Shown here in pieces: positions 7,001-26,940 of a stretch of 64,000 nucleotides of DNA. A program made the translations under genes and the position numbers. Origin of the DNA: Blastocladiella emersonii ATCC 22665 (taxonomy: Eukaryota > Fungi > Blastocladiomycota); contig JANHCV010000006.1 in the NCBI GenBank assembly GCA_025594325.1, forward strand, positions 806,001-870,000. The letters run 5' to 3'. The notes under the pieces are model-generated. The model made no database searches. It worked only from the letters and a program-made list of their open reading frames with translations, and was not told the DNA's origin. The first letter of the stretch is position 1. Every line of letters starts with the position of its first letter.

Positions 7001-7637
7001 CGTGCTCGCGACGCTGCTCAACAACCTCAAGGTGCAGGAGCGGCAGAACCGCGTGTGCACGACGGTCGCCATCGCGATCGTCGCCGAGACGTGCGCGCCC
7101 TTCACGGTCCTCCCGGCGCTCATGTGCGAGTACCGCGTGCCCGAGCTCAACGTGCAGAACGGCGTGCTCAAGTCGCTGTCGTTCCTGTTCGAGTACATTG
7201 GCGAGATGGGCAAGGACTACGTGTACGCGGTGACGCCGCTGCTCGAGGACGCGCTCATCGACCGCGACCTCGTGCACCGGCAGACGGCGTGCACCACGGT
7301 CAAGCACCTCGCCCTCGGCGTCGCCGGGCTAGGGTGTGAGGACGCCATGGTCCACCTGCTCAACCACGTCTGGCCCAACATCTTCGAGACGTCGCCGCAC
7401 GTCATCAACGCCGTGACCGACGCGGTCGAGGCGCTCCGCGTCGCGCTCGGTCCCGGCGTCCTCCTCAACTACGTCCTCCAGGGCCTGTTCCACCCGGCGC
7501 GCCGCGTCCGCGAGGTGTACTGGAAGGTCTACAACACCATGTACATTGGCGCACAGGACACGCTCGTCCCGTACCTCCCGCGGCTCGAGTCCGACGACCG
7601 GTTCCGCTGGGCGCGCGACGAGCTCGCGTACTTCTGA
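4095..7637 (+). CDS. SF3B1: Splicing factor 3B subunit 1 (U2 snRNP, Hsh155/SAP155), intronless, 1180 aa
   Basis: N-terminal RWDETP repeats, p14-binding-type segment ([17 protein letters not shown]), HEAT region [21 protein letters not shown]...[13 protein letters not shown]...[25 protein letters not shown], and C-terminal [14 protein letters not shown]. Confidence 0.99.
4508..4811 (+). repeat. Five RWDETP (U2AF-ligand motif) peptide repeats in the SF3B1 N-terminus
   Basis: Repeated (c)g(c/g)tgggacgagac(c/g)cc units encoding RWDETP five times, plus one variant (EWDRDE). Confidence 0.9.
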
Positions 7638-7895: not shown

Positions 7896-8685
7896 ATGTA
7901 TCACTCCAACCGCTCGCGTCCACCAGCGACCGCCCGGCTCGCCGCCGCGGTGATCCTCGCCGTCGCTGCCATCCTCGCCCTCGCCGCGGCCCCCGCCGCC
8001 GCGCAGGGGACCAAGTGCAGCGCCGACAACGACTGCGACCGCACCACGTTCGGGTGTACGTGCCCTTCACGCTCCCGCTCTCTCTGATCCGGCACATGAT
8101 CGCTCACTACTAAGCCCCCGCGTAGCCGAGTTCCGCTGCGGCCCGAACAACATCTGCGTCCCCGAGCGGTGCAACCCCGGGTTCGCCGCGCTGTCGTGCC
8201 AGTCGTACGACCCGACCATGTACTGCGCGGCATTCAAGTGCGTGCCGCGGATCCTCGAGAACGTGGCGTGCGACCGCATGTCCTTCGACAAGCAGTGCAT
8301 CGACGGGCTCGTGTGCAACGGCGGACAGTGCAAGAACTCGACGGCGATCACGGGTGGCGGTAGTGGCGGCAGCGGGCTGCCGGCGTTCTCGCCGCCGACC
8401 GTCCCGTCGACGGGCGCGACCAGCCCAAACAGGTCGACGACGGGCGGCAGCGGTAGCGCGGCCCCGCCAACGTCGTCGTCGTCATCGTCGAACAGCAGCA
8501 AGTCCGAGGGCGGGCTGCCGACATCGTTCTTCACGATCCTCGGCAGTGCGCTCGCGTGCCTCGTCGCCTTCTGCACCACGCTCTGGAAGCTGTACTGGCG
8601 CCGCCGCCGCGCCAAGGCTGCCGAGGCAGCAGCGGCCGCGGCGAACGGAGGTAAGCCGGCGCAGCAGCAGCAGCGCTTCGCGTGA
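7896..8685 (+). CDS. Array gene 1: 12-Cys single-pass surface protein with short basic tail; intron 8056-8125
   Basis: Signal peptide (AAVILAVAAILALAAAPAAAQ). CSADNDCDRTTFG|SEFRCGPNNICVPERC...C is joined by a phase-1 GTACGT..TAG intron, followed by an S/T/G stalk, a TM (FFTILGSALACLVAFCTTLW) and RRRR. Confidence 0.85.
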
Positions 8686-8904
8686 GTGTGGGGCGGGTTC
8701 GTGTCGTGCACGACGGGAGAGAGGAGGAGCAATAGACGAAGGTAGAGCGTGATGTGTCACCCATCATCCACCAGGTTAGCGCAACTGAGGGCCGGGTTTG
8801 GGCAGAGTACGTGGCGTAGGGTCCCTCCCTTCTGGAATCTCTAAAGAGCCGCCACACCCCCTGCTGTGCTCGCTCCCGCTCCCCACACGGTTGAGAGGTA
8901 GATC

Positions 8905-9911
8905 ATGCATCTTCGTCACGTACTCGCCGCGGCCGTCGTCGCGGTCCTCGCGCTGGCCCAGCCGAGCAACGGCCAGCTCCTCCACTGCAAAACCAACAAG
9001 GACTGCGAGTCGAGTACGTCGCCGTCGTTACCTTCGCGCGCTGATCCTCGACTGATCCTGACGCGAGCTCTCACCCAGCCTCGCTCGGCGCCGAGTTCGA
9101 GTGCGGCCCGACCAACACCTGCGTGCCCAAGGTGTGCTCCAAGACCAAGGACGGCATCCTGGGCTGCAAGTCGCCCGACGGCCGCCTCAAGTGCCGGTCC
9201 AGCAAGTGCGTGCGGCTCAACATCACGGGCGAGTGGTGCAACCCGTCGGCGCTCGACAGCGAGTGCGTCGACGGGCTCTCGTGCGATTACACGTACAAGA
9301 TCTGCTGGGCCGGCAACGCGCAGTCGCTCGCCGAGCACATTGCGTCCTCGCCTAAGTCGGTCGTCAGCGGTGGCGGTGGCGGCGGCGGCGGGATGTCGTT
9401 TGGCGAGTGGGCGGTCATCGGGATCTCGACTCTGGTCGGAGTCGCGGGGTTCGCGGCCGTCCTGCGGTTCGGCATGGTCGCGCCGTGGGCGGCGACGAAG
9501 CCCGAGATGATCCAGTCTATCACCATCTCACAGGGCAGCGGCGGCGGTGCGCACGGCGCGGTTGTCATGAACCCGCAGCAGCAGCAGCCCCAGCAGCAAC
9601 CGCAACAGCAGTACGCCAACGACCAGCAGTACCAGCAGTACCTCCAGTTCGTGCAGCAGCAACAACAACAACAGCAGCAGCAGCATCTCTACTCGCAGCA
9701 GCCGACCGGCGCATCGACGCTGCCGTACCCTCCGAGCACCTACCAGTCCGCGTCGACGCCGTACACGCCAGCGCCAGGCTCCATGAACATGCCTACCCCT
9801 TCGCCGGCGCCGCTAGTGCACGCTCCCGGCTCGATGGCCATGCCGACGCCCACGGCGGCAACGGTCTCGGCCGGGTCGCGCGTTGAGGCGCTGATGCGCG
9901 GCAACAAGTGA
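8905..9911 (+). CDS. Array gene 2: 12-Cys single-pass surface protein with Q/P-rich tail; intron 9014-9078
   Basis: Signal peptide MHLRHVLAAAVVAVLALAQ, then CKTNKDCES|TSLGAEFECGPTNTCVPKVC..., TM WAVIGISTLVGVAGFAAVL, and a polyQ/Pro tail with SM(N/A)MPTP motifs. Confidence 0.85.
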
Positions 9912-10154
9912 TGAGAGGTGTCTTCTCGTATAATGCATAGAGTTTCTTTGCATCGAAGGCGTCCGGAGAGGGTTGGCCAGGTTGAGGGCAAACGGGAGAG
10001 AGGGGAGCATAAGCTCAGCGGCCTGCCTGGGGGCGGCGCCACGGCCAACGCCCTCGGCGCCGCCGCTTCTCCGCCACAACGCCGCCACAACACCGGCCAT
10101 GGCCACGGCCTCGCTCGAGGCGATGAACGGCGCGCTACTCTTCCAACGCCACCG

Positions 10155-10898
10155 ATGAAGCATATGAAGATGATATTACTAGATGCACTCCTCTTCCTGA
10201 CCGCGCTCGCGTCGTCGATCCACGCCGTGTGCGCGCAGGTGACCGCGCCAGGTTTGACGCCGACCGCAACCCGCCCTGCAACCGTCTCCGCTACCCGGAC
10301 CGTGATTCCCACGTCCTGGTCGACGTCTGAACCGAGCCTCCGATCAAGCGGCCCGATCGACTTGGGCTTCCCGGCCTTCGCGCTCGCGTTCGTGATCATC
10401 TTGATGGGCGGCTGCGCTCAGCTCTTTGCGCGGAGCAGCAGATCGCCATCGAGAGCGAATGCCGCCGGCCTGACCCCGGCGCCGGAGCCGGCCGGTGCGG
10501 AACCTGCTGCTCCGCTTCCTGCCTACACGCCCTCGCCCGGCCCCGAGACGGTGACGGCGAACGGCGAGCGCGTCGCGTACATACCCGTCATCATTGATCG
10601 CAACGGCAACGTCGTCCAACCCGCACCGCCGAACTACACGTCGCTCGCGCGACCAAGCGTCGCGCCTGGTGGCATCCCGTACCCGCCTGCGGCATCGCAC
10701 TCGGCTCAACTCGCCTCCGCTGAACCGCCGAGTCTTCGCGACCCTATCTTGTCCGCGACCGCGATCCCGTACCCGCCCGCTGCGGCTCGCCCTGATCCGC
10801 CTCTTCCTTCGGGCTTGCCGCCGTTCCCAACTGAAGGGCCGCTCGCGCTACCCGAAGGGCCACTCGCGATGCCCGAGCCGCGGCCGGTTGTGCGGTGA
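10155..10898 (+). CDS. Array gene 3: ectodomain-less member (signal peptide, S/T stalk, TM, PY tail), intronless
   Basis: MKHMKMILLDALLFLTALASSIHAVCAQ is joined directly to a T-rich stalk and TM LGFPAFALAFVIILMGGCA. The tail has LPAY, VAYIPVIIDRNGN, PPNY and LAMPEPRP, motifs shared with paralogs. Confidence 0.8.
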   Translation: MKHMKMILLDALLFLTALASSIHAVCAQVTAPGLTPTATRPATVSATRTVIPTSWSTSEPSLRSSGPIDLGFPAFALAFVIILMGGCAQLFARSSRSPSRANAAGLTPAPEPAGAEPAAPLPAYTPSPGPETVTANGERVAYIPVIIDRNGNVVQPAPPNYTSLARPSVAPGGIPYPPAASHSAQLASAEPPSLRDPILSATAIPYPPAAARPDPPLPSGLPPFPTEGPLALPEGPLAMPEPRPVVR

Positions 10899-11101
10899 TG
10901 GTGACGGTCACAGCGCACGCCCTCCTCGGTTCCTGGTCGCTCGTCCGGAAGTCGGCAGTCACCAGATTCCTCGTCGCCACACTGCTTCACCCCGCTAGCG
11001 CGCAAGTCTCATCGGATTAGCCACCCCTCGCGCCTGTTGCCTGAAATCCTCGCCAGTGTCTGGAAATCGCTACCCCTCCCTCGTCCTTGGCTATATCCTG
11101 A

Positions 11102-11925
11102 ACGTATAAAACCAACTTCACAATCGTTACTCTCGCTGTCCTGCTGCTCGCGCACGTCGCCTCAGCGCAGTCTCTTGTCCGCTGCGACACGAATGACCAG
11201 TGTCCGAGTACGTCTTGACGCTGTCAATTCCAAGTTTCGCGTGCTGAACATCCGCCCAACTCTCAACAGTGCTCAACGGCGAGCCGCACGAGTGCGGCCC
11301 GACCAACGTGTGCGTCCCGACCTCGTGCCGCCCCGATCGGGCGGGCCTCGCTGGCTGCGCGACGGACGACGGACGCCTCGCGTGCATCAACAGCCGATGT
11401 GTCCTGCGCAAGGGCGTCGGTGAGTCGTGCTCAGCTACGCAGGACTGCGCGAATTCCCTCATCTGCCGGAGCGGCGGGTGTACTAGGCCGACCGCGACTA
11501 CCACAACTCTCGCGGCGACCCGTCCGGCTCAGCCGACGGGCGTGGTCACATCGCACGCTTCCGTCCCGGCTATGAACGACGCGGGCGGTGCGAGCGACGG
11601 CACCCGTGGAGCGATATTTGCTGCCGGAGTGATCCTTGTCGTCGTGATGGGATCAATCCAGCTCTACGGCTTCGGGTCGAAGCGCGTCAAGGGACCTTCA
11701 ACCCCGCTAAGGGACCGTCAACCCCGCAAGAAACCGAGCTCTTGGGCGATTCGACCCCGCCGCCTCCGTACACGCCGACCGCTCCCTGTGTCGTCACCGT
11801 GGTTGCTGTGGAGCCCACTTCCCGCGCTTCGATCAATTTGTGCGAAGGCGGGCCTGCATCAGTGTGAATGCCCGGGCGGCGGCCCTCTCGCTCAAGGAGC
11901 TTTACGTTCGCCACAGCCGCTGTGA
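11102..11925 (+). pseudogene. Array gene 4: disrupted 12-Cys receptor copy; intron 11208-11269
   Basis: ACG-TAT replaces the ATG-TAT start of paralogs 5/6, with an in-frame TGA just upstream. A 20-bp tandem duplication (11689-11708/11709-11728) shifts the PPPPYTP tail out of frame, and there is a TGA at 11865 in the ancestral tail frame. Confidence 0.75.
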
Positions 11926-12026
11926 TGCGCGAGCGCCTGTATCTCGCTCATGATTTGGTTGCGAAGTGTGTGTGCCCGAAGCTAGCAGATCAGCATCGCG
12001 ACAGGCTGCGAAGCGAGAGCCGCGGG

Positions 12027-12050
12027 ACGCGTCGATCAATCATGTGACCG
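12027..12050 (+). promoter_or_regulatory. Bipartite motif ACGCGT-N6-ATCATGTGACCG about 400 bp upstream of array gene 5
   Basis: Near-identical ~36-bp block to 18913-18948. It contains an MCB-like ACGCGT and an E-box-like CATGTG. Function is inferred. Confidence 0.5.
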
Positions 12051-12451
12051 CGTGAGACATTTTAGCGCTGCGCGCTCTGCTCGTTGTCGCCGGATTGGCG
12101 CCCTTGCAGCGACTCAGGTAAATCTTTGCGAGCTACAACGTGATAAAGAAGCCTAAACTAATCAGAAACTGATCGGACACAACCGTACATTCGTGTGAAC
12201 CAGTGGGTTGTACCGTTCGCTGCTATGAGGCCGAAGCAGAGACCGAAGCACCCTGCGAGTCGCAGGGATCGGATCCCTGAGCGGCCGCCCTTTCCCGCGG
12301 CATGCTGTGACCCTCGCACCTGCCCTCGCACTGACCGTGATCCGTCCCTTGATCGGGTGCCTGATCCGCGACGTTGTTGCGCCACTACGCCACACGCAAG
12401 TCGCCGACGATATCAGCTCCAGCTCCTTCCCGTCGGACCTCCATACTTGCA

Positions 12452-13569
12452 ATGTATACCCGTAGAATAGCTAGACTTGCTGCAAACTATGTGCTCGGCT
12501 TGCTCCTTGGCGCACACGTCCTCTCGGCTCAGACGGTCATCAGTTGTGGAACGAATGATCGGTGTGCCGCTTCTCGTACGCCAGCGCTCTTGATCGTTCT
12601 CGATTCAGGGCAGCACCGTTGACACAGTGGGTGGCATCTGTAGTCTTCAACGGTGAGCCGTACGAGTGCGGACCAACAAACATCTGTGTCCCGCGCTGGT
12701 GTAACCCGCAGCTCACTGGACTCGCTGGTTGTGTGACGGACGACAACAGTTTGGCATGCATCAACAACCGCTGCGTGTTGCGCAAAGCTTCAGGCCAAGC
12801 GTGCTCGTTGACGCTTGAGTGCGCCGACTTTCTCGCGTGCCGCAGCGGCACGTGCGTTGGGGCGACCGCGGTCACGGCAGCCCCCACGGCTACCCGAACA
12901 ATGCGGCCGACCGGTACAGTAGTCTCGAGTCGCGATCCGGCTCTCGAGGACTACTACATTCCAGGGCTCGACTGGACCGGGATGGCGGCCGGGCTCGTTG
13001 GGGTCGTGCTCATCTCGGGCTGTGTGTTCTTTTGCTGCAACCCTCCAGCACAAGGTGGGGTTCCGAGTCAACCTGCAGCGATGGGAGCAGAGTCCGATGC
13101 GATTCCGCTTCCAGCGTATACGCCGCCCGCCGCCAACCCCGCTCCTCCAGTTGCCGCGAGCCCTTCTGTCATTGACGCGACTGGAACGCGCATCGTTTAC
13201 GTACCCATCGTCATTGACCAGTACGGAAACCTAGTTTCGTCTTCGCCGTCGTATTCGACGCTTCCCGCAACGATCGAGCCCTCCGCCTCGATGCTTCCGC
13301 ATCCGTCGCCCAACGCGCCACCCTCATCCGTGGCTACTGGGACTGCCACCGTGTACCTCCCGCATCATGCTGCTGCCGCTGCCGAGCCACATTCGCTCCC
13401 CTACCCTGCAACGGCCCCGCCCCGCGCAACCTTGCCGTATTCGCCACGACCTGCAAGTCCGGCGAGCCCTGCTGGCGGAGCTGGCGGGTTCGGGACGCTG
13501 AGCATGCCTGAGCCGCGTCCTCACTCGCTCGACGAGCTTGGCACGGCAGCCGAGCCTCAGTCTCTGTGA
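12452..13569 (+). CDS. Array gene 5: 12-Cys single-pass receptor-like protein with PY tail; intron 12576-12643
   Basis: MYTRRIARLAANYVLGLLLGAHVLSAQ signal. Cys spacing is C-x5-C-x11-C-x5-C-x4-C-x9-C-x8-C-x4-C-x9-C-x5-C-x5-C-x4-C. TM MAAGLVGVVLISGCVFFCC; tail LPAY, IVYVPIVIDQYGN, LSMPEPRP. Confidence 0.88.
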
Positions 13570-13779
13570 TCGTCACTCGACGCGACGTCCCAGCGGTGGT
13601 CGCGATCCGTCGAGCCTAATAGTCTAGATTTTTATTTGTCGTGAAGTTCCGTGAGCGAGAGCTGATTGGAGACCTGATCCCCGTGCAGCCACGACGCCAC
13701 GACGACGCGCCCAGCGCCACATCCCTCGCCAGCGCTTCCGCCGGCAAGCTCTCCCCGCACTAGGACCTCTATACTTGCA

Positions 13780-14818
13780 ATGTATACGCTTAGACTATCT
13801 AGACTTGCTGCAATTTGTGTGCTATGGCTGCTGCTTGTGCAGATCGCGTCGGCACAGTTGATCGTCCCGTGCAAGCAGGACCTCGTGCTCCGATCCTGGT
13901 AAGTTTGAATCCGCACACGTGCAGCATTGATGAAACTCACATAGATACATTACAGCGTTTCAAGGCAACACGTACGAGTGCGGTTCGACCAACGTTTGCG
14001 TCCCTCGCTGGTGTCTCGCTGATGTGCCAAATCTCCAAAGTTGTGCGACGGACGATGGTCGTCTGACATGCATCGGCAATCGTTGCGTCCTGCGCAAGGG
14101 CGCTGGCGAGCCGAGCTCGACCACGCAGGAGTGTGCTATTTCCCTCATCTGTCGCGGTGGTGCGTGTATCGGAACGACAACGGCTTTGCCAACCACGGCA
14201 GCTTGTGGTGCGACACAACCGACCGCAACGGTGGCGCGGCAGAGTCCTGAACTCTCGTTTGTCACGGAAACTCCCGCAAACAACGGAACTCAAACCGCCG
14301 TCGCCCTCATCCTCGGCCTCTTGGGCCTCGCGCTCGCAGCCATGTGCTTCCTCACGCCGCGGAAACCGAGTGCACCAACGATCGATGTGCAGCCGGCTCT
14401 CGACGTTGAGGCCGACGCGATCCCCCCTCCCGCGTACTCGCCGCCTGCTCCAAACGTCGCTGTGGCCGTTGCAGTGAACCCGGCTCCTTCCGCTGTATCT
14501 GGCGCACGCGTCGTTTACGTTCTCATGATCGTTGACCAGTTCGGAAACCCTTTGACGTCGGCACCGACGTATGGGACACTCCCTGCGATCCCTCAACAAC
14601 CCGCATCATCTCTTCCATCAGCAGTCGCGTTTCCTCAAGCGACAATCCCGTACACGCCTCGCATATCGAATTCGATCAACTTGCGCGAGAGCGGACCCGG
14701 AAGCTTGTCCATGCCCGAGCCGCGTCCCCTCTCGCCCAACGAGCTTGACGCGACATCTCTGCCTCAACCCGCACAACTCTCACCCGTCGTATCGGCCATA
14801 AACGTTGCACGGCCGTGA
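13780..14818 (+). pseudogene. Array gene 6: 12-Cys receptor copy with an apparent 2-bp deletion in exon 1; intron 13899-13955
   Basis: Exon 1 reads TGC AAG CAG GAC CTC G-- TGC TCC GAT CCT G. Restoring 2 nt gives the paralog pattern C-x5-C-x3|FQG; as written, splicing is out of frame. The rest (TM, PPAY, VVYVLMIVDQFGN, MPEPRP) is intact. Confidence 0.65.
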
Positions 14819-15159
14819 TTTCATGCTGAATATACTGCGCATTATGAACGAATCCACCAAATCGGAACCCGCCACGCTTGGGCGATCGATAAGTGGGCCC
14901 GTCATGAGGATCCGGGGCAAGAACTAGCTTTCGTTTCAATGCGCTGTCGCGCCCACCAACTGCGCGACCAACGTCACAGCTGGTCAGGGAGCGCGTCGTT
15001 CGCTTCGCGCTCCCGCCCCCGCGCCTTGGACTCGCTAAGTTTGAGCGCATTGGTCGCGCGCCACCACTCGAGCACTTCGCGATGCCGCCGGCGGACGAAT
15101 GGAGAGCTAGATCGAACGACTATATGATACAAAAAACGCAAACAGGAGCGATGGACAAT

Positions 15160-16944
15160 CTACGACATGAACGTGGCGAGCGACTTGACAATGAGCGCGG
15201 GGCTCTTGCCGGCCGAGTAGACGGGGATCGGGAACTTGTCGGCGGGCAGGCGCATGAGGGTGGCGACGGCGAGGCGCGCGGCGCGGACCGAGTACTCGAC
15301 GGTGAAGACCACGTCGTCGGGCATCTCGACGTACTGCGACACGAAGGCGAGGTTGGTCGAGCCGCGCGGCACGACTTGCGGGCGGTCCTCGGCAGTGCGC
15401 GTCAGGAACTGCGACGTGATGAAGGGCATGTACGCGGGCACGACCGACGCCGACGCCAGGATCCGGTCGCGGTTGGCCGGCTCGACGAACGCGCCCTTGA
15501 GGTGGAACAGCAGCTCCTCGAGCATCTCGCGGCCCGTGCACTCGCGCATCGTCTTCTGGATGTAGTTGCCCTTGCGGTCCGAGAACAGGCCGTACGCCCA
15601 GAACACCTGCATGTTGGCCGGCTGGTTGCGGAAGTGCGGCTGGTACGCGAGCACGATCGACATGAGCCAGTTCGAGTCCTTGAAGGTGATGAGCGCGCCC
15701 GTGCCGGCCTCGTTGCCCGAGAACTGCTCGACCAGGTCGAAGAAGGTGGTGTCGTCGGTGAAGGTGGTGGTGAAGGACATCCAGTTGGACTCGTGCTCGC
15801 GCGACGTGAAGGCGGCCGGGTTGCCCGCGACCGTCGGGAACTCGTGCGCGATCTGCTGCCACACCTTCCACGCGCCGTCGGCGGCGTGCGCGGGCGCGCC
15901 GTTCGGGATCTCGGGCGCGGGCTTGTCGGTCGACCCGAGCGTGGCGGCCGACGTCATGGACCCGTTGGTGACGAACACGAGGTCGGTGGCCGCGTCAATG
16001 GCGAGCTCCTCGGTCTCGTTCTTGTCGGCGCCCTCGTGGATCAGGTGCAGCGCGCGCACGGTCATGGTGTGCGGCTCGACGGTCGGGCCGCGCGCGAACT
16101 CGACGCGGTCGACCTGGACGCCCTTGGCGAAGACGACGCCGAGGTTGCGCAGGTGCGTGGCGAGCGGGAGCACAATCGAGTCGTACTGGTTGAAGGGCGT
16201 GCGGTCGACGCCGGCGAGCGTGTCGATGCGGGCAAACTCGTGCGAGAAGCGGTGCAGGTAGCGCTTGAACTCGACGGCGCTGTGCCACGGCTCGAAGGCG
16301 AACATGGAGCACCACATGTACCAGAAGGGCGTGGTGAAGAAGTGCTCGCCGAAGCACTGGTCGATGCGCTTGGTGCCGAGCTCGGCCTCGGTCACGGACA
16401 GCACGCTGAGCAGGTCGACGCGGTCGGCGTTCGAGAAGCCCATGTGCGTCACGTCGATGATCTTGCCGTCCTTGTCGACGACGCGGGCCTGCGCGTGCGT
16501 CTTGTGCTCGTGGTTGAAGCACTTCATGTCGTCGAACACGGAGCGCGGCTTGTCGCCCGTGGCGTAGTCGGCGCCCAGCACGGCCTCGACGGTCGCGGCC
16601 GAGACGCCCGGCGGGACGGGCTCGATCGAGGGGACCCAGGCGAGCAGCTCGTACAGGTTGAGGTACGACAGGTTGAGCATGCGGCCGCCGCGGATCACGT
16701 AGCCGCGGTCCTTGTCGCCGGCGCCGTCGAGCGCACCGCCGAGGATGTGGGCCTCCTCGTAGATGGTGATGTTGGCGGGCGGCACGCCCGCGTCGCGGAT
16801 CAGGTACGCGGCCGCGGCCATGCTGGCGATGCCGCTGCCGACCATGAAGGTGCGCGTCGAAGCCGGGTCGCGGCCGGCGGGGATGTCGTCGGGCACGGCC
16901 CGCGAGGTAGCCTGGTGCGACGAGAGGAAGTGGCGGGTGAGCAT
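15160..16944 (-). CDS. Oleate hydratase / myosin-cross-reactive antigen family FAD enzyme, intronless, ~594 aa
   Basis: GSGIASMAAA Rossmann motif, GGALDG, GYVIRGGRM, FWYMWCSMFAFEPWHSAVEFKRYLHRF, RTPFNQYDSIVLPL, VTNGS, FWAYGL, MPFITSQF, DVVFTVEYSVRAA. Start placed at MLTRHF. Confidence 0.95.
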   Translation of the reverse strand: MLTRHFLSSHQATSRAVPDDIPAGRDPASTRTFMVGSGIASMAAAAYLIRDAGVPPANITIYEEAHILGGALDGAGDKDRGYVIRGGRMLNLSYLNLYELLAWVPSIEPVPPGVSAATVEAVLGADYATGDKPRSVFDDMKCFNHEHKTHAQARVVDKDGKIIDVTHMGFSNADRVDLLSVLSVTEAELGTKRIDQCFGEHFFTTPFWYMWCSMFAFEPWHSAVEFKRYLHRFSHEFARIDTLAGVDRTPFNQYDSIVLPLATHLRNLGVVFAKGVQVDRVEFARGPTVEPHTMTVRALHLIHEGADKNETEELAIDAATDLVFVTNGSMTSAATLGSTDKPAPEIPNGAPAHAADGAWKVWQQIAHEFPTVAGNPAAFTSREHESNWMSFTTTFTDDTTFFDLVEQFSGNEAGTGALITFKDSNWLMSIVLAYQPHFRNQPANMQVFWAYGLFSDRKGNYIQKTMRECTGREMLEELLFHLKGAFVEPANRDRILASASVVPAYMPFITSQFLTRTAEDRPQVVPRGSTNLAFVSQYVEMPDDVVFTVEYSVRAARLAVATLMRLPADKFPIPVYSAGKSPALIVKSLATFMS

Positions 16945-18913
16945 CTTGGTTGATGTGGTTGGTTTGTTGGTTGATGAGTTCGGCGAGTGTGGGGGGAGCG
17001 GGCGGTCTTTATATGGCTCGGGTCTAGGTCGGAGGACGCGAGGAGCCGAGGAAACTTTGCGAGCGGCGAGCAGCCGAACGTGCAGAAGACGCGTGAAGGA
17101 CCGCGAGAACAGCGACGCCAAGGACAAGCACGCAGCATGACGCGTCATGCATCAACGCGTAGTCTAAACGTGGTCGGCGGGCTTGCTGTAGAGTAGAGGG
17201 AGTGACGACAGCAAGATTCGGGCTCAAGTGACGTAGCAAGGAGCGGCAGAATCGCGGCGGCGTGGCGCAGCACGTCCCTCCCTCTCCACTCGCGGCTCGC
17301 GGATGGGAGAACGTGGGCCGGCTCGGCCGCGAACAACCGCGCTCTGTGCTCGCGCGCGTGAAAACGTTATGGCGTGGTCGCGCCCGTGGTGATCTCATCG
17401 AGCACGACGCAGCGTGTGTCATGCAAGATCCACAGCTGATGTCACTATAGAAGGAAACAGAGTAGCGTACTTGACAGGGAGGTGGAAGCTAAGCTGGATG
17501 CGCAGCCGTGACGATACAGAGAGGAACAGAATGTATCGACGACGGCTAGACTAGCAACTGAACAATCAAAGGAACAAAAGAGGGGGGAAGCGGGGACGAC
17601 CGGTCGAGATGGCGGTGCGACGGTCGGGCGGGCGGCCGCCCCCCCGGGGCGGCGATCAAAACAGAACAAGTGGTCGGGATGACGCGATTCTCACGTGCAT
17701 CACGCGCGGCTGGTCCGAGACGCGTCTCGCACTCGGTCCCCGCGTGTGCGTGTACACTTGAACTGTCACTCCCTACCCTGCCGTTGAGCGCCACGATCCC
17801 TTCACTCATTAGACTCACATCCCTTCGGCTCGGAGAGGGTCGGGACGGAGGAGGAGAGTCAGAGCGAGTCACTGTGACGCATCTCTGATCAGCCGGCTTG
17901 GGCAGGGCTTGAAGGGAGGGCGGCGCCACACCGCCACGTTGCGGATGCCGTCATCCGATCTCGTTCATTTCACTTCGTGTCGCTCATGTCATTCGTCTCG
18001 CGCAGCTTGAAGTGAGAAAGTCCATACATTGGGAACAGCAAACTCGTGCAGCCATGTCCACGATCGCCGGCATCACGACCGTCGTCAGCTCGGCCGCCTG
18101 GATCATGCCGACTGCGTGCGTCGTGGTCAACGCGAGGACGTCGGCCCTTCTCGAACGTGACTGCGCTCGGATTGAACGTTTGACTCGACTCCTTCGCACT
18201 TGGTCGACTTGTTAAAATGCTATTCGAGCTACATCGTGTCGGTGTGTGTGTGTGCTCCAGTCAACAGAAACACTGCAACCTCCTTGCGACGGGATTGCGC
18301 GACAGCTCCGCCAATGTGTCCCGTAAGTGCGTCATCGCTGCCGCGTTTACACCAGACGTTGCAGTTCCCACATCGCTTGCAGCGATAACTGGGACGCGTG
18401 AGCCCGCTAACGTGACGGTGGCCATTTATTCAATGGCTTCCCTTGATCAGTCATCATCGTCCTGGCGACGCCGCTAACGGAGGAGGTGGCCAATGCGATT
18501 TAGTGACGGGTGCTGGCGGCTTGGGAAGTCAATGATCATGATGCGGAAGCCGCCGCGGCCGCTACCGTCCGACTTAAAGGTTCCAAAGATGCCGCCGTTG
18601 CTGAATTACTTGCGGCCATTGGCGTCGCGCACCCCATCGTTGCGCACGGTGCCGTCGGGCTAGCTGATGAGCATGATGCAATAAACGTTGTTACCGCTCT
18701 GGAGCGCGTCGCCGCAGTGGTTGCGGACCGATTACGGCGCGTCGCAATGCGCTTGGTACGAGGTCAGCGCAGTCGCCTTGGCGTTGACCTGGTGCGAGCG
18801 GCAAGAGTACTGCGCGGCTTCATGTCGAGCTCACGCGTGGAACACCTTCACCTAGTGCCGAGCCGAACATGGCCAAAGAATGCGCGATGACCCGGCGAGA
18901 AGCGAGGCGAAAG

Positions 18914-18937
18914 ACGCGTCGATCAATCATGTGACCG
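18914..18937 (+). promoter_or_regulatory. Second copy of ACGCGT-N6-ATCATGTGACCG, about 85 bp upstream of array gene 8
   Basis: gacgcgtcgatcaatcatgtgaccg is identical to the copy at 12026-12050. Confidence 0.5.
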
Positions 18938-19021
18938 TGCGAGACATTCTGATCTGGTGCTTTCCACGACGCCACACCTGCTCGGCGGCCACTCTACCCT
19001 GCCCACACCTCTACAACTACA

Positions 19022-20054
19022 ATGCATCCATGTAAACTAGATAGACTTGCTGCAATTTATGCGTTCGGACTTCTGCTTCTCCATGCCGTGTCAGGCCAGA
19101 CGATCGTCATGTGCGAGTCAGACTTCTGGTGCCCCGATACTTGTAAGACATGCCTGGTCGCTGCTGAGCACTCGGAAAGCTCACACGATGGCTGATATAG
19201 TGTTTAACGGTGAGCCTTATGAATGCGGTCCCACAAATTTATGCGTTCCTCGCTGGTGCCGTCCCGATCTGAAGGGGCTCGCGGGCTGCGTGACGGGCGA
19301 CGGTCGGCTGGCATGCGTCAACAACAGGTGTATCCTACGCAAGAGCTTGGGCGAAAGATGCTTGGCCGCGCTGGAATGCGCGGACTCGCTCACTTGCGAA
19401 CGCGGGATCTGCAACGGGACGATCATGGCCACCGCCACCGTTCCAGCAACGAATACGATGCGACCAACCGGAACTGTGACGTACAAGTCTCGCGATACAA
19501 CGCTAGTGGAGAACGGCGACAAACGATTCGGCGTTGGCACCGCGATTCTCGTCGTCTTGGGACTTGCATTGCTTGGTGGGTGTGCCGTGTTCACTTTCCG
19601 CACTCGCAAGTCGAACCAAGTCCCAGCACCTGGTGGACAGCAGCCGGAACTCGAAGCCAATGCGAGCGCAATCCCACTACCCGCATACTCGCCGCCCGCC
19701 CCCAACGTTGCTGCCGTAGTCGTCCCTTCTGCTTCCCTCGTCGCTCCACCCGGAGGCCACGTCGTTTATGTTCCCGTGATCGTCGACCAGTTTGGAAACC
19801 TCTTTCTGAGGGTTCCGGCACAAGCTGGTCCTGCTTTGACCACTGGGCCGTTTGCGCCGCATGCAGCCGCGGGTGCGGTTGCCGATCTCGGCTCTTCGGC
19901 GCCCGCCGTGGCCGATCCACGTCATGTCTTCTCGGAAAACGCGCCTGGGACCCCTCCTATGCCGGAACTACGGTCCAACTCGCCAACTGGCCGTACTAGT
20001 GTGGCCGTCCCTCAACCCGCTCAAGCTTCACCTGCCGCAGCGACCTCCGCTTGA
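19022..20054 (+). CDS. Array gene 8 (numbered counting the hydratase as 7): 12-Cys receptor-like protein; intron 19143-19200
   Basis: MHPCKLDRLAAIYAFGLLLLHAVSGQ, then CESDFWCPDT|LFNGEPYECGPTNLCVPRWC..., TM VGTAILVVLGLALLGGCAVF, and tail LPAY, VVYVPVIVDQFGN. Confidence 0.87.
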
Positions 20055-20262
20055 CGCTATGAAGCAACACCGTGTACACGATCTAAATAGCTCAATAGAA
20101 TAGACTCTGTTTCCTCCACCCAAATCTTGCGGCGCAACGACGCGAGCTGGGCGACGTCGAAGACGCGCGGCGCCGTGGCGCAGGTGTGGCGCAAGGCGTC
20201 GCCATCGCCTCAACGCCTTCGCCACATCTTCCTCGCTCCTTCATGCCTCATAGACCTCTGCC

Positions 20263-21312
20263 ATGCAACTTTATAGAACAAGACGACTTGCTGCAATTGC
20301 TTCTCTCGCATGTGTCCTGGCTCTCGCATGGACCGCGAGCGCGCAGATCATCGTCAAGTGCAAGTCGCAGGATGGATGTCCCGCCATGCGTACGTGAAGC
20401 GGCGATCCTCGGCGGATCCTCTCGCCTTTCTGACACTCGGCGCAACTAGTCTTCAACGGCGAGCCGTACGAGTGCGGTCCAACCGGGATCTGCGTGCCCA
20501 AGTGGTGCAACCCAAACTTGACGGGTCTAGCTGCGTGCCATGACCCGGACTACAGCCTTGTGTGCATCGCCAACCGCTGCGTGCTGCAGAAAGGTGCCGG
20601 CGAGGCATGTAGCACCTCGAACGAGTGCAGCGTCTACCACACGTGCCGAGCCGGTGTCTGCAAATCCGTCCTTGGCACGACGACGCTTGTCCCAAGGGCC
20701 ACTTCCGCGCTTCGGACACCGCGACTCACCGACGTACCGCTATCCGACGGCACAACCGGCACCTACTTGGTCATCGGTGTCCTCTCGGTGCTCAGCGTGT
20801 CAATGGCTTGTATGTGCGTCACGCGCCGGCAAAATCCAAAGCAGGCTTCGCCAAACGGCGACGACCCGCTTCCCGCATATACGCCGCCAGCGCCCGGCGC
20901 GCCGATCGCCGCGGATCCAGCTCCTCAAGTCGGTAACGGCGCTCGGATCGTCTACGTCCCCGTCGTCGTTGATGCGGACGGCAACCCGATCCCGGCGCCG
21001 CCCGGGTACCAGGCGCCGCTGTCCGCAACCGCTCGGATCACGGCGCAATCACCGACCGTCCCCGCGGCCACCGCCGCCGTGTCATCCGCACGCGGCTCGC
21101 AGATCTCACCCTCGATCAACGTTGTCACCACGACCGTTGCTCAGTCCAGGCCAGCGCCGCTCACGATCGAGGACTACGGCTCGCTCGCCATGCCCGTCCC
21201 GCAGCGCGTCACCGCGGACGAGCTCGGGTCCCTTGCGATGCCGCAGCCGGCGATGCTTGCGCCGCTCACGCGCTCGCTCTCGGCGTCGCCACCGCGCTCA
21301 CCGCAACCATAG
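20263..21312 (+). CDS. Array gene 9: 12-Cys receptor-like protein; intron 20390-20449
   Basis: MQLYRTRRLAAIASLACVLALAWTASAQ, then CKSQDGCPAM|LFNGEPYECGPTGICVPKWC..., TM YLVIGVLSVLSVSMACMCV, and tail LPAY, IVYVPVVVDADGN, PPGY, two LAMP motifs. Confidence 0.87.
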
Positions 21313-21425
21313 AACTAGATATAGAACTTGTGACACCCTTGCATGAAGACCACTGTAGCCAGGCTCGAACGCGGGCTGCGCCTCTCGGGCTTCGACTTCT
21401 CCACTTGACAACATAGATCCCCGCA

Positions 21426-22438
21426 ATGTACCATTATAGACTAGCCCAACTTGCTGCAATAGTGATATCGGCAGTGATCCTCGCGCCGGCGCGAGTCGCG
21501 GTCGCGCAGGGCTTGGTGCCGTGCCGGTCGGCCGACGACTGCCCCGAGTTGTGTACGCTGGTTTCTCCCTGCTGTTGGAGTGCAACGGCAGATTGCCCCT
21601 CACACGAGCGACTCCAGTGTTTAGTGGCGCGCCCCACGAATGCGGGCCGACCGCCTTCTGCGTCCCGCTGCAGTGCCGCGCGGACCTCCCATGCGCCGAC
21701 CCCAACGAGCACCTGACGTGCATCGACGGCCGCTGCGTGCTCCGCCGGCACCTCGGCGAGCCGTGCTCCTCCACACCCGACTGCCGCCCCGGGCTGTGGT
21801 GCCCGAGCGGGGGCGACGTCTGCGCGGCGCTGGGCGGCTCGTCGGCGCGCACCGCGACGCGGACGGCGACGGCGACTCGAACGATGCGAACTGCATGGGC
21901 GACACGGACCGCGTGGCCGACGGCCTCGGTGAGCTGGAGCTCGCCGCCGCCGTCGCTCGCCGAACCCGCGACCAACTTTGCGGCAACGAGCTCCATCGCG
22001 CTCGTCGCCGGCTTCGTCGTGTTCGTCGCGACGGCGGGGCTCATGTACGGGTTCCGGAAACGGCCGCCGCCGAGCCCCATCACGTCTCGCGTCGGCCAGG
22101 TCATGCACGACGAGGAGATCTTTGGGTCCGCGTCGTCGATCCAGCTGCCCGCCTACGCGCCGCCCGCGACGTCGGATCTTGGCCACTTTGCCGTCGCGGG
22201 CGACCATATCGTGTTTGTGCCGCCCGACGGGAGCACGGTCGCGTCGCCTCCCGACTACGCGACGCTTCCGCCGATGGTCGAGGAGGAGTCCGGGGTGCCG
22301 TTGTCGCCGCACAGCGCGTCGGCAGTAGCCGCGGTTGCGGACGGAGCGCTCTCGTATCCGCCGCGACACGCGTCCATCATGCTCTCCACGGCCGCAGCAT
22401 CATCCACGCCAAGATCTTCATCACCATCGCCATCATGA
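21426..22438 (+). CDS. Array gene 10: 12-Cys receptor-like protein; intron 21553-21617
   Basis: MYHYRLAQLAAIVISAVILAPARVAVAQ, then CRSADDCPEL|LFSGAPHECGPTAFCVPLQC..., TM IALVAGFVVFVATAGLMYGF, and tail LPAY, PPDY. Confidence 0.86.
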
Positions 22439-22781
22439 GCGTTGACGCGACCACCATCTCGTATATACCCCATGGCCGCGCTCGACGGCATCTTGACGCG
22501 TCCGTCGGTCGAGTCTGATCCGCGTCACTCTCTCGCGTCCACCATTACGGAATAGCATAAAGAATACAGCAGGGACTTTTCCGAAACTCGGCGCACATCC
22601 CCCGGATCTGAAACGGCCCGTACATCGGGTGACTTGGAGGGCGGCGCCCACAGGCACACCGAGCGGCGATGCTGCCGCAGCCCTCGTCGCCTCGACCTCG
22701 CTTGTTCCGTCTGAGCTCTCCTCGTGGCGTCGGCGAACTAGAGCCGACCATAGACTTGCAACCTCGCTCAACAACTCGTCC

Positions 22782-24721
22782 ATGATGCACGCGCGCCGGC
22801 CCTCGTCCATGACCGTCACGGCGGCCCTCGCCGTCGTCGCCGTGGCCGTGCTCCTGGCCACGACCGCGAGCCCCGCGCTCGCTACGTCGTGCCGCTCGGA
22901 CAACGACTGCGACCGGTCGAGCTTCGGGAGTACGTTGATCCGCCGCCGACCTCGCCCCGACGGCCGCGAACTCACCCCCTCACCCTTCGTGTAGACGAGT
23001 TCCGCTGCGGCCCGAACCGCATCTGCGTCCCTGAAAGGTGCAACCCCGGGTTCGCGGTGCGGTCGTGCCAGTCGTACGACGCGTCGCTGTACTGCGCCAA
23101 CTTCCAGTGCGTGCCGCGCCCCGGCGAGGGCGGGTTCTGCGACACCTTCGACCCGTTCCAGAAGCAGTGCGTCGACGGGCTCGTGTGCGACGGCGGCCGC
23201 TGTAAGCGCAGTGGCGGTGGCGGCGGCGGTGGGGGTTCGCGCCCGGACCCGCCGCCTGACCCGAAGCCCGTCGATCCACCAAAGCCCGTCGATCCGCCTA
23301 AGCCCGTCGACCCGCCGAGCGGCGGTGGTGGTGGCAGCTCGGGCGGGGGCGGCTCGGGGTCCGGCAACAGCGGGGGCGGGAACAGCAACAACGGTGGTGG
23401 ATCCTCGAGCGGCGGGAACGGCAACAACTCGGGCTCAAACCGCGGCGGGAACAGCAACAACAACAACTCGGGTGGCAACAGCGGCTCGGGCTCGAACGGT
23501 AGCGGCTCCGGCGCGAGCGGCTCCAACAACAACAACGGCGGTAGCGGCAGTAACTCGGGCTCGAGCAACCGCGGGTCCGACGACACCTCGAACAACGGCG
23601 ACGACGACCGTGCCGCGACCACCGTCAACGGCACGCGGATCCCGAGCGCGACGCGCTCGTCCGCGACGATCCCGACGGGTACCACGCGCGGCAGCAGCGG
23701 CAGCAACAACCCGAGCGCGTCGGACGACACGGCCTCGTCGACGTCCAGCACCTCATCCATCTTCAGCAACCCGGCGGTCCTCGTCGGCGGCGCGGCGGCC
23801 GCGGGCGTCGCCGCGACACTGACCATGTTCGTGCTCAAGCAGATGGGCAAGGTCAGCGTGTCGCACAAGAAGGAGTCCAAGGTCGTCTACCACGGCCCCG
23901 GCGGCGGCGCGCAGCAGTCGCAGCAGTTCCAGACGCCACCGCCCGCTCCGGCGCCTGCCCCGGCGCCTGCCCCGGCACCAGCCGCGGTCCAGGCCAACAC
24001 GACGGGGTCGCCGGTGCCGCAGCTGACGCCGGTCTCGACGGGCGACGCTCCCGCGCCGCGACCGTTCATCCCGACGTCGATGGCCGCCATGGACTCGACC
24101 GCGCCTGCGGCTCAGCCGCAGCCCGATCTCACGTACCACACGCTCGGCCGGCCGACGTCGTACACGGTCCCGTACCCGCACCCCGGCGCCTCGTACCCCG
24201 CGGCCACGTACCAGCCGCAGCCGCAGCCGCAGCCGCAGCAGGGCTACGCGTACCCGACCGAGTTCAACACCACCAGCAACCCGGCCGACGGCGCCGGCTA
24301 CCCGCCGACCATGGACGCGTCGTGGGCGCCGATGCACACGCCGCTGCCCATGTCGCCGCCCGTGTACGCGACGGCCCCGCCGCTCGCCACGCCGCCGCCG
24401 CCGCTCGTCGTCACGTCGCCCGCCGACCGCGGCTTGTACGGGACCATGTCGATGCCGCAGCCGACGCCGCTCGGCTCCCACTCGCCGCAGCCGTCGCCGC
24501 TCGCGATGCCGTCCCCGACCCCGATCCCGCCGTCTCCGTCGCACCTGCCCTCGCCGTACCCGATGGCGCCGCCGGTCCTCGAGGCGGTCCCCGGGTACGC
24601 GGCGCAGGGCCCGAGCGGGCCGATCCTCGTCGCGGCGCACGAGACGGGCGGGTCGCTGATCCTCCCGCAGCAGACGCAGTCCCGCACGCAGACGCCCGCG
24701 CAAACGCAGCCACGGGCGTGA
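22782..24721 (+). CDS. Array gene 11: 12-Cys receptor-like protein with PKPVDP repeats, long G/S/N stalk and Pro-rich tail; intron 22930-22994
   Basis: Signal peptide, then CRSDNDCDRSSFG|NEFRCGPNRICVPERC... (very similar to gene 1), (PKPVDP)x3, a TM around VLVGGAAAAGVAATLTMFVL, and a tail with PPVY and MSMPQP. Confidence 0.87.
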
Positions 24722-25102
24722 TGTCGTTGTTGATGATGATGTTTCATAGAATAGCGGGACCTCGGCGGTGCGCGAGCTGGCAGCCACGCGGCCGCGTTTC
24801 ACGCGTGAGAGCGTGTTGCGCCACGGAATCGCGGGCCGACTATTTCAGGGAGGACTTCATTAACGCCTGCGGTTCGGCCCGCGTCGCGTCCGCGCCGGCG
24901 GGGGTGGCTAGTAAAATCATCGGCTGAGACAAAGAGGGAGGGACGTGCAACGTCACGCACACGGCGCGCCGCAGCAGCCAGAAGCTGGTGCCCATCGATG
25001 CTGCCGTGAGCGTTGCCGGATGCCCTTGAAAAGGGCGGAGCGCCGGTGCTCTCTCTCACGATTCGTGTAAGGTAGACAACGACAACGAGCAGACAAGATA
25101 CC

Positions 25103-25720
25103 ATGAAGCCGAGTAGACTGGCAACGACGCGATACCTCACCATGGCCGCCGTCGTGATCGCGACCCTGATCGCCGCGGTCGCGGCCCAGTCGGGCGCCAA
25201 GACGGCGAACCATGCCAGTAACGAGAGTCTGCCGGCACTCCCTCAAGCGTGCAAGACGTCGGCGGACTGCGAGTCGCTCGGAGCGAACATGAACGGTACG
25301 CTGACGCGTTGACCACTTGTCGCCTCGATGGACCGCAGCTCATCGCTTACCTCCCCTCTAGTCTCCCTGATCTGCATGCCCGACACCAAGACGTGCGTCC
25401 CGCGGCTGTGCGCGGTCTCGAGCTTCGCCGACCTTTCCTCATCGCCGACGCGCTCGTGCCCGCTGTTCGACCAGAACACGTTCTGCAACCGCGACAGCGG
25501 CGACGAGTCGGCCTTCACGTGCGTCGTTCGGCGGCCCGTCAGCAGCCCGTGCGATCCGGAAAGCATCGAGTCCATGTGCGCGGCCGGATCCGTGTGCGTG
25601 TCAGGGACGTGTATCCGCAGCGCCAAGGCGGTGCTCGAGTCGTCGCACGGCGCGAAGAGCGCGGCGGGATCATGGATGGCGATGCTGGCGGTTGCGGTGG
25701 GAACGAGTTTGAGTGTATAG
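25103..25720 (+). CDS. Array gene 12: 12-Cys protein ending in a hydrophobic C-terminus (putative GPI anchor, no cytosolic tail); intron 25296-25361
   Basis: Signal peptide, then CKTSADCESLGANMN|VSLICMPDTKTCVPRLC...CVSGTC, with the same phase-1 intron position. Ends SSHGAKSAAGSWMAMLAVAVGTSLSV*. Confidence 0.8.
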
Positions 25721-25761: not shown

Positions 25762-26940
25762 TTACTGAGCGCCTGCCTCGGCGGCGAGCGCAGCGTTGGT
25801 CGCGGGCGCCGTCGCTGGGCGCGGATGCACCGCGGCCACCAACACGGACGTGCCGATCGACGAGACGGGCAGCGAGTTGACGCGGCGGCGGGCGAACCCC
25901 GGCGCCGCCGGCGCGACGGGCGACGCGACCGCGGCGAACCGCGAGCCCATGGTCGGCGACGCGGACGCGAGCCGGCTCGCCTGGTACGGGACGCGCGTGA
26001 ACGTTGACGACGACACGCACGTGGCGCCGCGGTTGTACGGTCCCGTGCCCGTCACCGCCGCCGCCGAGGACCTCGCGGCGAGGACGTGCGTCGGCGACGC
26101 GGGCGTGATGGGCAGGCCCGCGGGGCCCGTGAACTGGAACTGGAACTCGGCGAGCGAGGCGGTCACGATCGGCGGCGGCGGGGGTTTCCGCTTTCGCGCG
26201 TCGCCCGCAGCCGCCGCGGCCGCTGTTGTTGTTGGCGATGCGGATGTCGCGAGCAAGGAGTGTCGCGCGACAGGCACGCGGCGGAAGATCGAGAGCCCGG
26301 TGGGGCCGAGCAGTGCCGCGTCCGAGAACATGGTCATGGGCCCGCCCTTCGGGCGCACGGGCCGGTGCTCGATCCACGCGCGGACCGACTCGATAGCGGC
26401 GGGTTTGCCGTCATCATCTGCGGTAGCCGATCCAGTAGTAGAAGCCGATGGGCTCTGCGCGGCAGCGGAGCCCGCGGAGGGCGGTGGCGACGGGAGCGTC
26501 GAGTCCGCGGCAGTGCGCCGGCGCTTGGACGCGCGGTCCGGCGACGCGGGCGCGTCCTCGTCGTCGGACCCGGGAATGTCGTTCACGAGCACGTCGGCCA
26601 GTCGCTTCCCAGAGCGGTTCCGTTTCGGCCGAGCAGGAGCGGCAGGGGCGGATTCGGGCGCAGCCTCCTCAGCTACCGCTGCCGGTGCCGCCGGCGCGTC
26701 GCCCTTGCCCGCCTTGGCCTTACTGCGCGTCGTGACGCCCAGGGTGCCGGGCCACGCGAGCCCCGTCGCGAGCCGGCGCTTGGCGCCGCGGACCGTCGCG
26801 GGCGAGTCGGGCGCGGGCACATTGCGCGGAGTGACGAGCTTGGGTCCGGGTTTCGCGGCAGCGGGAGCGGTCGCGGGCGCGGCTGCAGCCGCTCGAGTGG
26901 AGGCGCGGGTTGAAGTCATGGTGGTGGCGGTGCGTTGCAT
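25762..26940 (-). CDS. Hypothetical low-complexity A/P/S/T-rich protein with basic (NLS-like) patches
   Basis: Open frame with GC3-rich codons from MQRTATTMTS; KRNRSGKR, SKRRR and RKRK clusters. No domain recognised. Confidence 0.65.
   Translation of the reverse strand: MQRTATTMTSTRASTRAAAAAPATAPAAAKPGPKLVTPRNVPAPDSPATVRGAKRRLATGLAWPGTLGVTTRSKAKAGKGDAPAAPAAVAEEAAPESAPAAPARPKRNRSGKRLADVLVNDIPGSDDEDAPASPDRASKRRRTAADSTLPSPPPSAGSAAAQSPSASTTGSATADDDGKPAAIESVRAWIEHRPVRPKGGPMTMFSDAALLGPTGLSIFRRVPVARHSLLATSASPTTTAAAAAAGDARKRKPPPPPIVTASLAEFQFQFTGPAGLPITPASPTHVLAARSSAAAVTGTGPYNRGATCVSSSTFTRVPYQASRLASASPTMGSRFAAVASPVAPAAPGFARRRVNSLPVSSIGTSVLVAAVHPRPATAPATNAALAAEAGAQ

Follow-up and report, generated by a model that had tools for sequence, protein, structure and literature searches.

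We analysed a window of 64,000 nucleotides from Blastocladiella emersonii ATCC 22665 (contig JANHCV010000006.1, positions 806,001 to 870,000), in which eleven related genes in one orientation, here called g1 to g11, span positions 7896-25720 (Table 1; coordinates are those of the window). The original prediction, made from the DNA letters, had described these genes as a tandem array of diversifying single-pass surface proteins with a 12-Cys head, most of them with a PY motif ([LP]PxY) in the cytosolic tail that would couple extracellular recognition to the ubiquitin ligase Rsp5. Our analysis confirms the observation of the array, with corrections, and partly supports its interpretation. A head profile (A1), made from the head segments encoded by exon 2 and compared with the six-frame translation of the window, recovered ten head copies, all on the + strand within 7896-25720 and with E values of 3e-18 to 1e-34, while the next-best match in the window had an E value of 0.14. 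The eleventh copy, g3, is headless and was recovered by a tail profile (E 2e-28), its stalk, transmembrane segment and tail being homologous to those of the family, so that the count of eleven co-oriented homologs stands. Scans with the head and tail profiles found no extra degenerate copy at 17149-19021 or elsewhere in the window. It had also been claimed that all copies but one have the 12-Cys head. Ten heads were indeed found, but the copies that lack an intact 12-Cys head-bearing gene are two, not one.

In the head-bearing copies, a short first exon encodes the signal peptide and Cys1-x5-Cys2, and the rest of the gene, a long second exon, follows after an intron of 57-70 nt placed past Cys2. 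In nine copies this intron is of phase 1 and 58-70 nt long, with a donor of the type GTACGT, GTACGC, GTAAGA or similar, a YAG acceptor and CTGAC/CTCAC-like branch sites, and its removal restores a single open reading frame (ORF) in each. The phase-1 intron after Cys2 that had been proposed as a common trait therefore holds for these nine copies and fails in g6, which has a phase-2 donor. The spliced models give Cys spacings of 5 / 9-12 / 5-6 / 4 / 5-15 / 8 / 4-11 / 9 / 5-9 / 5 / 4-6, in agreement with the pattern first described, and the DNA identity among head copies is 65-73%. The GenBank protein KAI9178918.1 (531 aa) is a fusion of g1 and g2 with splice sites identical to those of our two models, an agreement that lends the introns no independent support, since the public annotation of B. 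emersonii was made ab initio with funannotate (PMC9730499). The four runs listed for the source sample, all DNA and none RNA, are concordant with the assembly over 8880-14879, including the defects of g4 and g6 described below, and as their contigs have the same source as the assembly they give no independent check of these defects. In the low-depth run X3, position 10770 shows T>C and one nucleotide is missing at 11073; the two deep runs match the window.

Table 1. Members of the array and other features of the region (positions in the window; TM, transmembrane segment).
Feature	Position	Strand	Exon 1	Intron	Exon 2	Remarks
g1	7896..8685	+	7896-8055 (signal peptide, Cys1-2)	8056-8125	8126-8685	
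g2	8905..9911	+	8905-9013	9014-9078	9079-9911	
g3	10155..10898	+				single exon; headless, own signal peptide, stalk, TM, conserved tail with LPAY and PPNY
g4	11102..11925	+		11208-11269		probable pseudogene; head retains 12/12 Cys codons
g5	12452..13569	+	12452-12575	12576-12643	12644-13569	intact
g6	13780..14818	+		57 nt; GTAAGT donor at 13899	from 13956	
g7	19022..20054	+	19022-19142	19143-19200	19201-20054	intact
g8	20263..21312	+	20263-20389	20390-20449	20450-21312	intact; tail with LPAY and PPGY
g9	21426..22438	+	21426-21552	21553-21617	21618-22438	intact
g10	22782..24721	+	22782-22929	22930-22994	22995-24721	
g11	25103..25720	+	25103-25295	25296-25361	25362-25720	most divergent head
MCRA-family (oleate hydratase) gene	15160..17148	-				PF06100, E 1e-180; unrelated, splits the array
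12-mer GACTTGCTGCAA	12474-12485, 13802-13813, 19044-19055, 20285-20296, 21448-21459	+				exact in four, one mismatch in g9

Every copy has one transmembrane segment, and the predicted proteins show a type-I topology of the secretory pathway with a disulfide-rich head, joined in part of the family to a disordered tail that carries a class-I WW-ligand motif. The layout of signal peptide, Cys-rich head, Ser/Thr/Pro-rich stalk, one transmembrane segment and Pro-rich PY tail is real for six members. These six copies, g3 and g5-g9, share a tail of 130-176 residues with 15-25% Pro. In g5 a 12-Cys head, stalk and transmembrane segment are followed by a 176-aa tail carrying LPAY, RIVYVPIVIDQYGN and LSMPEPRP; the tail of g7 has LPAY and VVYVPVIVDQFGN, and that of g9 has LPAY and PPDY with a shortened hydrophobic block. 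The other members end differently. Exon 2 of g1 encodes Cys3-12, a Ser/Thr stalk, the transmembrane segment and a basic tail of 33 aa without PY, while g2 has a 12-Cys head, a transmembrane segment and a Gln/Pro-rich tail without canonical PY. The head of g10 is 69% identical to that of g1 and is followed by a Gly/Ser/Asn stalk of 185 aa, a transmembrane segment and a Pro-rich tail of 295 aa of another type, with one PPVY. The end of g11 (25640-25720) encodes a Ser/Ala/Gly-rich stretch and about 15 hydrophobic residues before the stop codon, the protein sequence closing with HGAKSAAGSWMAMLAVAVGTSLSV and having no cytosolic tail; this C-terminus looks like a glycosylphosphatidylinositol (GPI)-anchor signal, with a short third exon, from a candidate acceptor at 25793, as a possible alternative. 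In addition, a twelfth, solitary member, KAI9178868.1 (P0021; L001 10001-11417), lies on the same contig about 135 kb before the array. Its phase-1 intron, of 61 nt, sits at the family position, and the protein has a mucin-like Thr/Ser-rich run of about 70 residues between head and transmembrane segment and a Gln-rich tail without the conserved PY block.

Two of the copies are damaged. In g4 the codon at 11102, which had been taken as the start, is ACG instead of the ATG of its paralogs and directly follows an in-frame TGA. A tandem duplication of 20 bp at 11689/11709 moves the tail into another frame, while PPPPYTP can still be read in the old one; g4 is a probable pseudogene. In g6 the phase-2 donor clashes with the frame of exon 2, which needs phase 1, and Cys2 and Cys9 are gone; its tail ORF is intact with the motifs PPAY, VVYVLMIVDQFGN and LSMPEPRP, and we regard it as a probable pseudogene or head-truncated copy. 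These two probable pseudogenes, together with the headless and the GPI-like copy, bear out the birth-and-death history proposed for the family. Anchors and tails have been swapped among its members (PY tail, short basic tail, Gln/Pro tail, GPI-like end, headless copy), and on this comparison the head appears as a common unit set on several anchors and the conserved tail as a second unit able to exist headless.

The conserved tail consists of four blocks in an otherwise poorly conserved context (28% pairwise identity outside them). The PY block, [IL]P[LP]PAY[TS]PP, has 76% pairwise identity, with P-A-Y-x-P invariant. A hydrophobic block, G-x-R-[IV]-V-Y-V-P-[IV]-[IV]-[IV]-D-x-x-G-N, is 52% identical and includes a Y-x-x-Phi signal. 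A second block of the form P-P-x-Y or P-x-Y-x-T-L-P is 37% identical, with the canonical PPxY in g3, g8 and g9, and the C-terminal block L-[SA]-M-P-E-P-R-P is 58% identical. AlphaFold2 predicts the tail as disordered, with a predicted local distance difference test (pLDDT) of 56, and a pLDDT near 75 is reached only in stretches that overlap the PY block and the hydrophobic block. A reading of the VPIVID part of the latter as a clathrin box was discarded, having no fit to L-Phi-x-Phi-[DE]. The claim that most tails carry LPxY or PPxY is right as a count, 7 of the 11 having an in-frame [LP]PxY (none in g1, g2 and g11), but the aligned and conserved LPAY/PPAY is confined to g3 and g5-g9, and the PPVY of g10 is at chance level (P 0.58 on shuffling).

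The head has about 85 residues and 12 Cys, and AlphaFold2, given an 11-row alignment, models it (pLDDT 86.4; predicted template-modelling score 0.70) as three beta-hairpins, each closing one 4-Cys module, in line with the three modules that had been read from the Cys spacing. When A1 was aligned with seven DUF7107 units (hhalign), the last 39 columns matched with 95.4% probability and an E value of 2e-8. In Pfam, sub-threshold matches to DUF7107, EB or Dickkopf_N were obtained for nine of the ten heads, every copy staying under each gathering cut-off: the best scores were 23.0 against 24.6 for DUF7107 (g5), 21.2 against 24.3 for EB (g7) and 20.4 against 25 for Dickkopf_N (g11). P0001 and P0021 gave no Pfam match to these three families at E 0.01. 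The spacing of Cys9-12 is 5/5/4 in g4, g5, g7 and g8, and 8-9/5/4 or 5/5/6 in the others. An exhaustive profile search of 1.84 billion representatives yielded 121 matches, of which two, KAI9178918.1 and KAI9178868.1 of this genome, were full-length, these being the only database proteins with the head; head, transmembrane segment and cytosolic tail were combined in P0001 and P0021 only. The other 119 are mostly bacterial-lipoprotein-like with many Cys-rich repeats, judged from their sequences, and of five outside matches that were tested, all proved to be true DUF7107/EB proteins and four also had Dickkopf_N. At the profile level these comparisons support the head as a diverged relative of the DUF7107/EB/Dickkopf_N 4-Cys module, a broad class without a specific function. 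The remark that no named fungal family with this domain was recognised must be modified to this extent: the full architecture was found in this genome only, but the last ~40 residues of the head align to the three families.

Structural neighbours in the AlphaFold database were models named EB or Dickkopf_N, at E values of 4e-3 or worse, besides one uncharacterised protein of 172 aa (E 3.7e-4; TM-score 0.58). The best neighbour there, A0A0L0T2H1, is presumably from Allomyces macrogynus, going by its accession series. Cluster models of EB, Dickkopf_N and DUF7107 in the ESM Atlas reached TM-scores of 0.5-0.56. Fold matches in the PDB were not significant (Foldseek E >0.1; VIA-align Z <=3.6, to Bv8, Dkk4-N and colipase), and a PDB sequence search found no match. 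A granulin or tumour necrosis factor receptor (TNFR) cysteine-rich domain reading of the 12 Cys was rejected on the lack of CC doublets and on low TM-scores to TNFR-family chains.

The copies have diverged for a long time. Synonymous sites in the g5 group are saturated (proportion of synonymous differences, pS, 0.57-0.78) at a head proportion of nonsynonymous differences, pN, of 0.20-0.37. In pairwise Goldman-Yang estimates (F3x4) omega, the ratio of nonsynonymous to synonymous rates (dN/dS), was below 1 in all eight head pairs, and in six of them significantly so against omega = 1. The values are far below 1 in the g5 group and 0.17 for g1-g10 (likelihood-ratio test statistic, LRT, 13.2, significant); 0.33 for g2-g10 (LRT 3.8) and 0.51 for g1-g2 (LRT 1.9) are non-significant. 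Nei-Gojobori dN/dS values above 1 for g1-g2 and g2-g10 were dismissed as an artefact, inflated because a GC content at third codon positions (GC3) near 0.9 caps the synonymous differences, and codon-frequency-corrected maximum likelihood brings omega below 1. The copies are shown by these codon comparisons to be old and under purifying selection, and the diversifying selection that had been suggested for them was not borne out. There is no sign of it as a pervasive force, and selection at few loop sites is compatible with such saturated paralogs. The head tree has no well-supported branch. Despite this divergence the exon-2 ORFs of g5-g9, 272-307 codons long, are open, although we estimate that at this GC content one stop would arise per 35 codons or so; this argues that the genes are, or recently were, real coding genes. 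GC3 follows a gradient along the array, from 0.87-0.93 in g1, g2, g10 and g11 through 0.85 in g9 and 0.75-0.78 in g3 and g8 to 0.60-0.71 in g4-g7; in the neighbouring housekeeping genes it is about 0.95, and the GC content of the spacers is 0.54-0.65.

The whole architecture was not found elsewhere in word-based protein searches, the profile search of representatives and two metagenome scans, a set that did not take in other blastoclad genomes as DNA. The word-based search with g5 and with a six-member alignment returned zero matches, missing even the queries themselves because the genes are unannotated, and the metagenome scans with head and tail patterns gave 143 and 331 pattern matches with 0 confirmed. 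The lineage-specific character first proposed agrees with these blank results outside this genome, and as far as the searches reach this is a real family, restricted to Blastocladiella.

Some short nucleotide elements recur in the array. The 12-mer GACTTGCTGCAA occupies signal-peptide codons at positions +23 to +34 of the coding sequence of g5-g9, with 5 matches against 0.23 expected. Its codons end in A or T (AGA CTT GCT GCA) in a GC3-rich genome in which synonymous sites elsewhere are saturated, which suggests constraint at the nucleotide level, for instance a regulatory or RNA element. A near-palindrome across the ATG, ATACTTGCAATGTAT, is common to g5 and g6. An exact 21-mer, CGTCGATCAATCATGTGACCG, occurs at 12030-12050 and 18917-18937, inside a 36-bp match of 94% identity, the first copy lying 422 nt before g5 and the second 105 nt before g7. 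The DNA contigs show roughly five-fold greater depth at this element and break off there, so that it looks like a short dispersed repeat. As for the neighbours, SF3B1 (4095-7637) lies upstream of the array. The MCRA-family gene has a GC3 of 0.95 and lies on the strand opposite to the array; the MCRA family is mostly bacterial.

How might these proteins work? [LP]PxY is a class-I WW ligand of Nedd4/Rsp5 adaptors such as the Shisa-like proteins, Comm/PRRG4 and CYYR1, as described in three papers (PMC10531659, PMC5578492, PMC11399591). The conserved PY block of g3 and g5-g9 fits such a ligand of a WW-domain ligase, short of proof, and for this group sorting by, or recruitment of, a Nedd4/Rsp5-type ligase is a tentative reading to which we give close to, though not quite, an even chance. 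The head would be exposed on the cell surface as a module that binds proteins or glycans. The disordered tail, free of Lys past its first 12 residues, would rely on short linear motifs. Of these, the invariant [LP]PAY[TS]PP block would recruit the ligase, and the RIVYVPVIVD..GN block with its YxxPhi could add an endocytic or partner-binding signal. The PY-group proteins would then be sorted off the surface, or would deliver the ligase to neighbouring membrane proteins in the manner of PY adaptors. Past the first 12 membrane-proximal residues, the six tails hold 0 Lys against 30 Arg in 856 residues; in other proteins of the window K/(K+R) is 0.35-0.37, or 0.17 for the disordered N-terminus of SF3B1. 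Such a lack of Lys in the distal tail would favour action on partners in trans over self-tagging there.

Several observations weigh against this interpretation. On shuffling, a lone [LP]PxY falls short of significance in tails so rich in Pro (P 0.08-0.32 in g5-g7), and so the PY argument rests on the conservation of the motif and not on its occurrence. The Lys count comes from non-independent paralogs in a GC-rich genome. The conserved tail is lacking in g1, g2, g10, g11 and P0021, and the head accordingly works without it in five members. The fold matches of the modelled head are weak and functionally uninformative. The introns are predicted from splice signals and ORF continuity, and GenBank has no gene called at 9911-15160 nor over the start of g7, leaving g3-g7 uncalled. 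Finally, the low GC3 in the middle of the array suggests weak expression or relaxed constraint.

The same proteins could be sensors of the wall or matrix similar to Wsc and Mid proteins, or adhesins. The head would then probe the wall, the cyst coat or the substrate, signals would pass through the tail to partners in the cytosol, and PY and YxxPhi would only set turnover. We consider this unlikely, if worth serious attention. The layout of signal peptide, Cys-rich head, Ser/Thr-rich stalk, one transmembrane segment and disordered tail is identical, and the long stalks of P0021 (mucin-like) and g10 (rich in Gly, Ser and Asn over its 185 aa) would suit such a role; Mid2-domain clusters also appear, as a lead only, among the language-model look-alikes of g3 (0.79). 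However, no WSC or Mid2 match was found in Pfam at E up to 10, the PY-group stalks, at 30-48 aa, are short and contain no more than 24-37% Ser/Thr, g3 retains the tail without a head, and the strongly conserved PY block would be left without a role.

A different possibility is that most of the array is decaying or silent, only the GC3-rich end genes g1, g2, g10 and g11 being at work and the central copies being relics, for which the two broken copies, the omission of g3-g7 by the public annotation, the nearness of GC3 in g4-g7 to the intergenic GC content and the absence of RNA from the listed runs could all be quoted. We find this highly doubtful: the long open exon-2 frames of g5-g9, head omega values far below 1 and the conservation of the 12 Cys and of the tail blocks all count against it, and the annotation that omits these genes is ab initio and also misjoined g1 and g2. 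We hold a further reading to be very improbable, in which the heads would serve as tethered knots resembling inhibitors or toxins (colipase, prokineticin or protease-inhibitor types) that guard the wall-less zoospore or hit competitors, with the tail only as an anchor. The structural neighbours that suggest it (Bv8, colipase, Dkk, a fungal-protease inhibitor and spider knottins) are all below significance (Z <=3.6, E >0.1), and it leaves the conserved cytosolic motifs and the headless copy unexplained.

Returning to ligase recruitment by the PY tails, a bolder version of it would make the family a blastoclad invention that converged on the Shisa/Comm adaptors, combining an EB/DUF7107-type head, a Lys-free PY tail and Nedd4/Rsp5 in the ligand-triggered removal of partner proteins, for example at the switch from zoospore to germling. 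The headless g3 would then act constitutively or as a decoy, while members with a GPI-like end or a short tail would compete for the same ligand without signalling. In this full form we hold the scenario to be decidedly unlikely.

B. emersonii is being established as a model among zoosporic fungi, and the paper on its genome reportedly stresses tandemly diversified membrane-tethered sensory proteins. The array adds a family largely missed by the public annotation, which fuses g1 with g2 and has no gene call for g3-g7 at the least. Should the PY tails indeed recruit Rsp5, the family would represent an independent origin of the animal-type adaptor design of Cys-rich head, transmembrane segment and PY tail, and its headless, tail-less and GPI-like copies would be natural variants with which to dissect that design; if they do not, an ordinary orphan family of surface proteins remains.

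Compared with known systems, the family shares parts with several. With DUF7107 (PF23416), EB (PF01683) and Dickkopf_N (PF04706) the third module of the head has the spacing C-x5-C-x5-C-x4-C in common, whereas the loop lengths of modules I and II differ and the head, unlike the repeat arrays of those families, is one fixed 12-Cys unit joined to a transmembrane segment and a cytosolic tail. The Wsc1-3 and Mid2 sensors have their parts in a similar order (Cys-rich head, Ser/Thr stalk, transmembrane segment, disordered signalling tail), but their Cys pattern is another, the array tails carry PY and not Rom2-binding or NPFxD signals, and neither WSC (PF01822) nor Mid2 (PF04478) was matched when Pfam was scanned at E values up to 10. 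The original prediction had placed the architecture beside Shisa, WBP1, VOPP1 and yeast Rcr1; the same scan gave no homology to any of them, including no match of Shisa_N and its relatives in ten proteins, and what stands is analogy. The small Rsp5 adaptors Rcr1 and Rcr2 (PF12273) of yeast are, like the PY group, single-pass proteins with a PY-bearing cytosolic tail, yet they have neither a Cys-rich head nor a signal peptide of the array type; the RCR Pfam domain has no match in the array proteins, and RCR clusters among the language-model look-alikes of g3 (0.75) are a lead only. Unlike the Shisa-like PY adaptors of animals (Shisa, WBP1, VOPP1, CYYR1 and Comm/PRRG4), the family includes five members without a PY tail, and although those adaptors too have an N-terminal Cys-rich ectodomain, the head of the array, with 12 Cys and no CC doublets, belongs to another fold class. 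In g3 and g5-g9 the analogy with them would lie in the single transmembrane segment followed by a Pro-rich, disordered tail with [LP]PxY.

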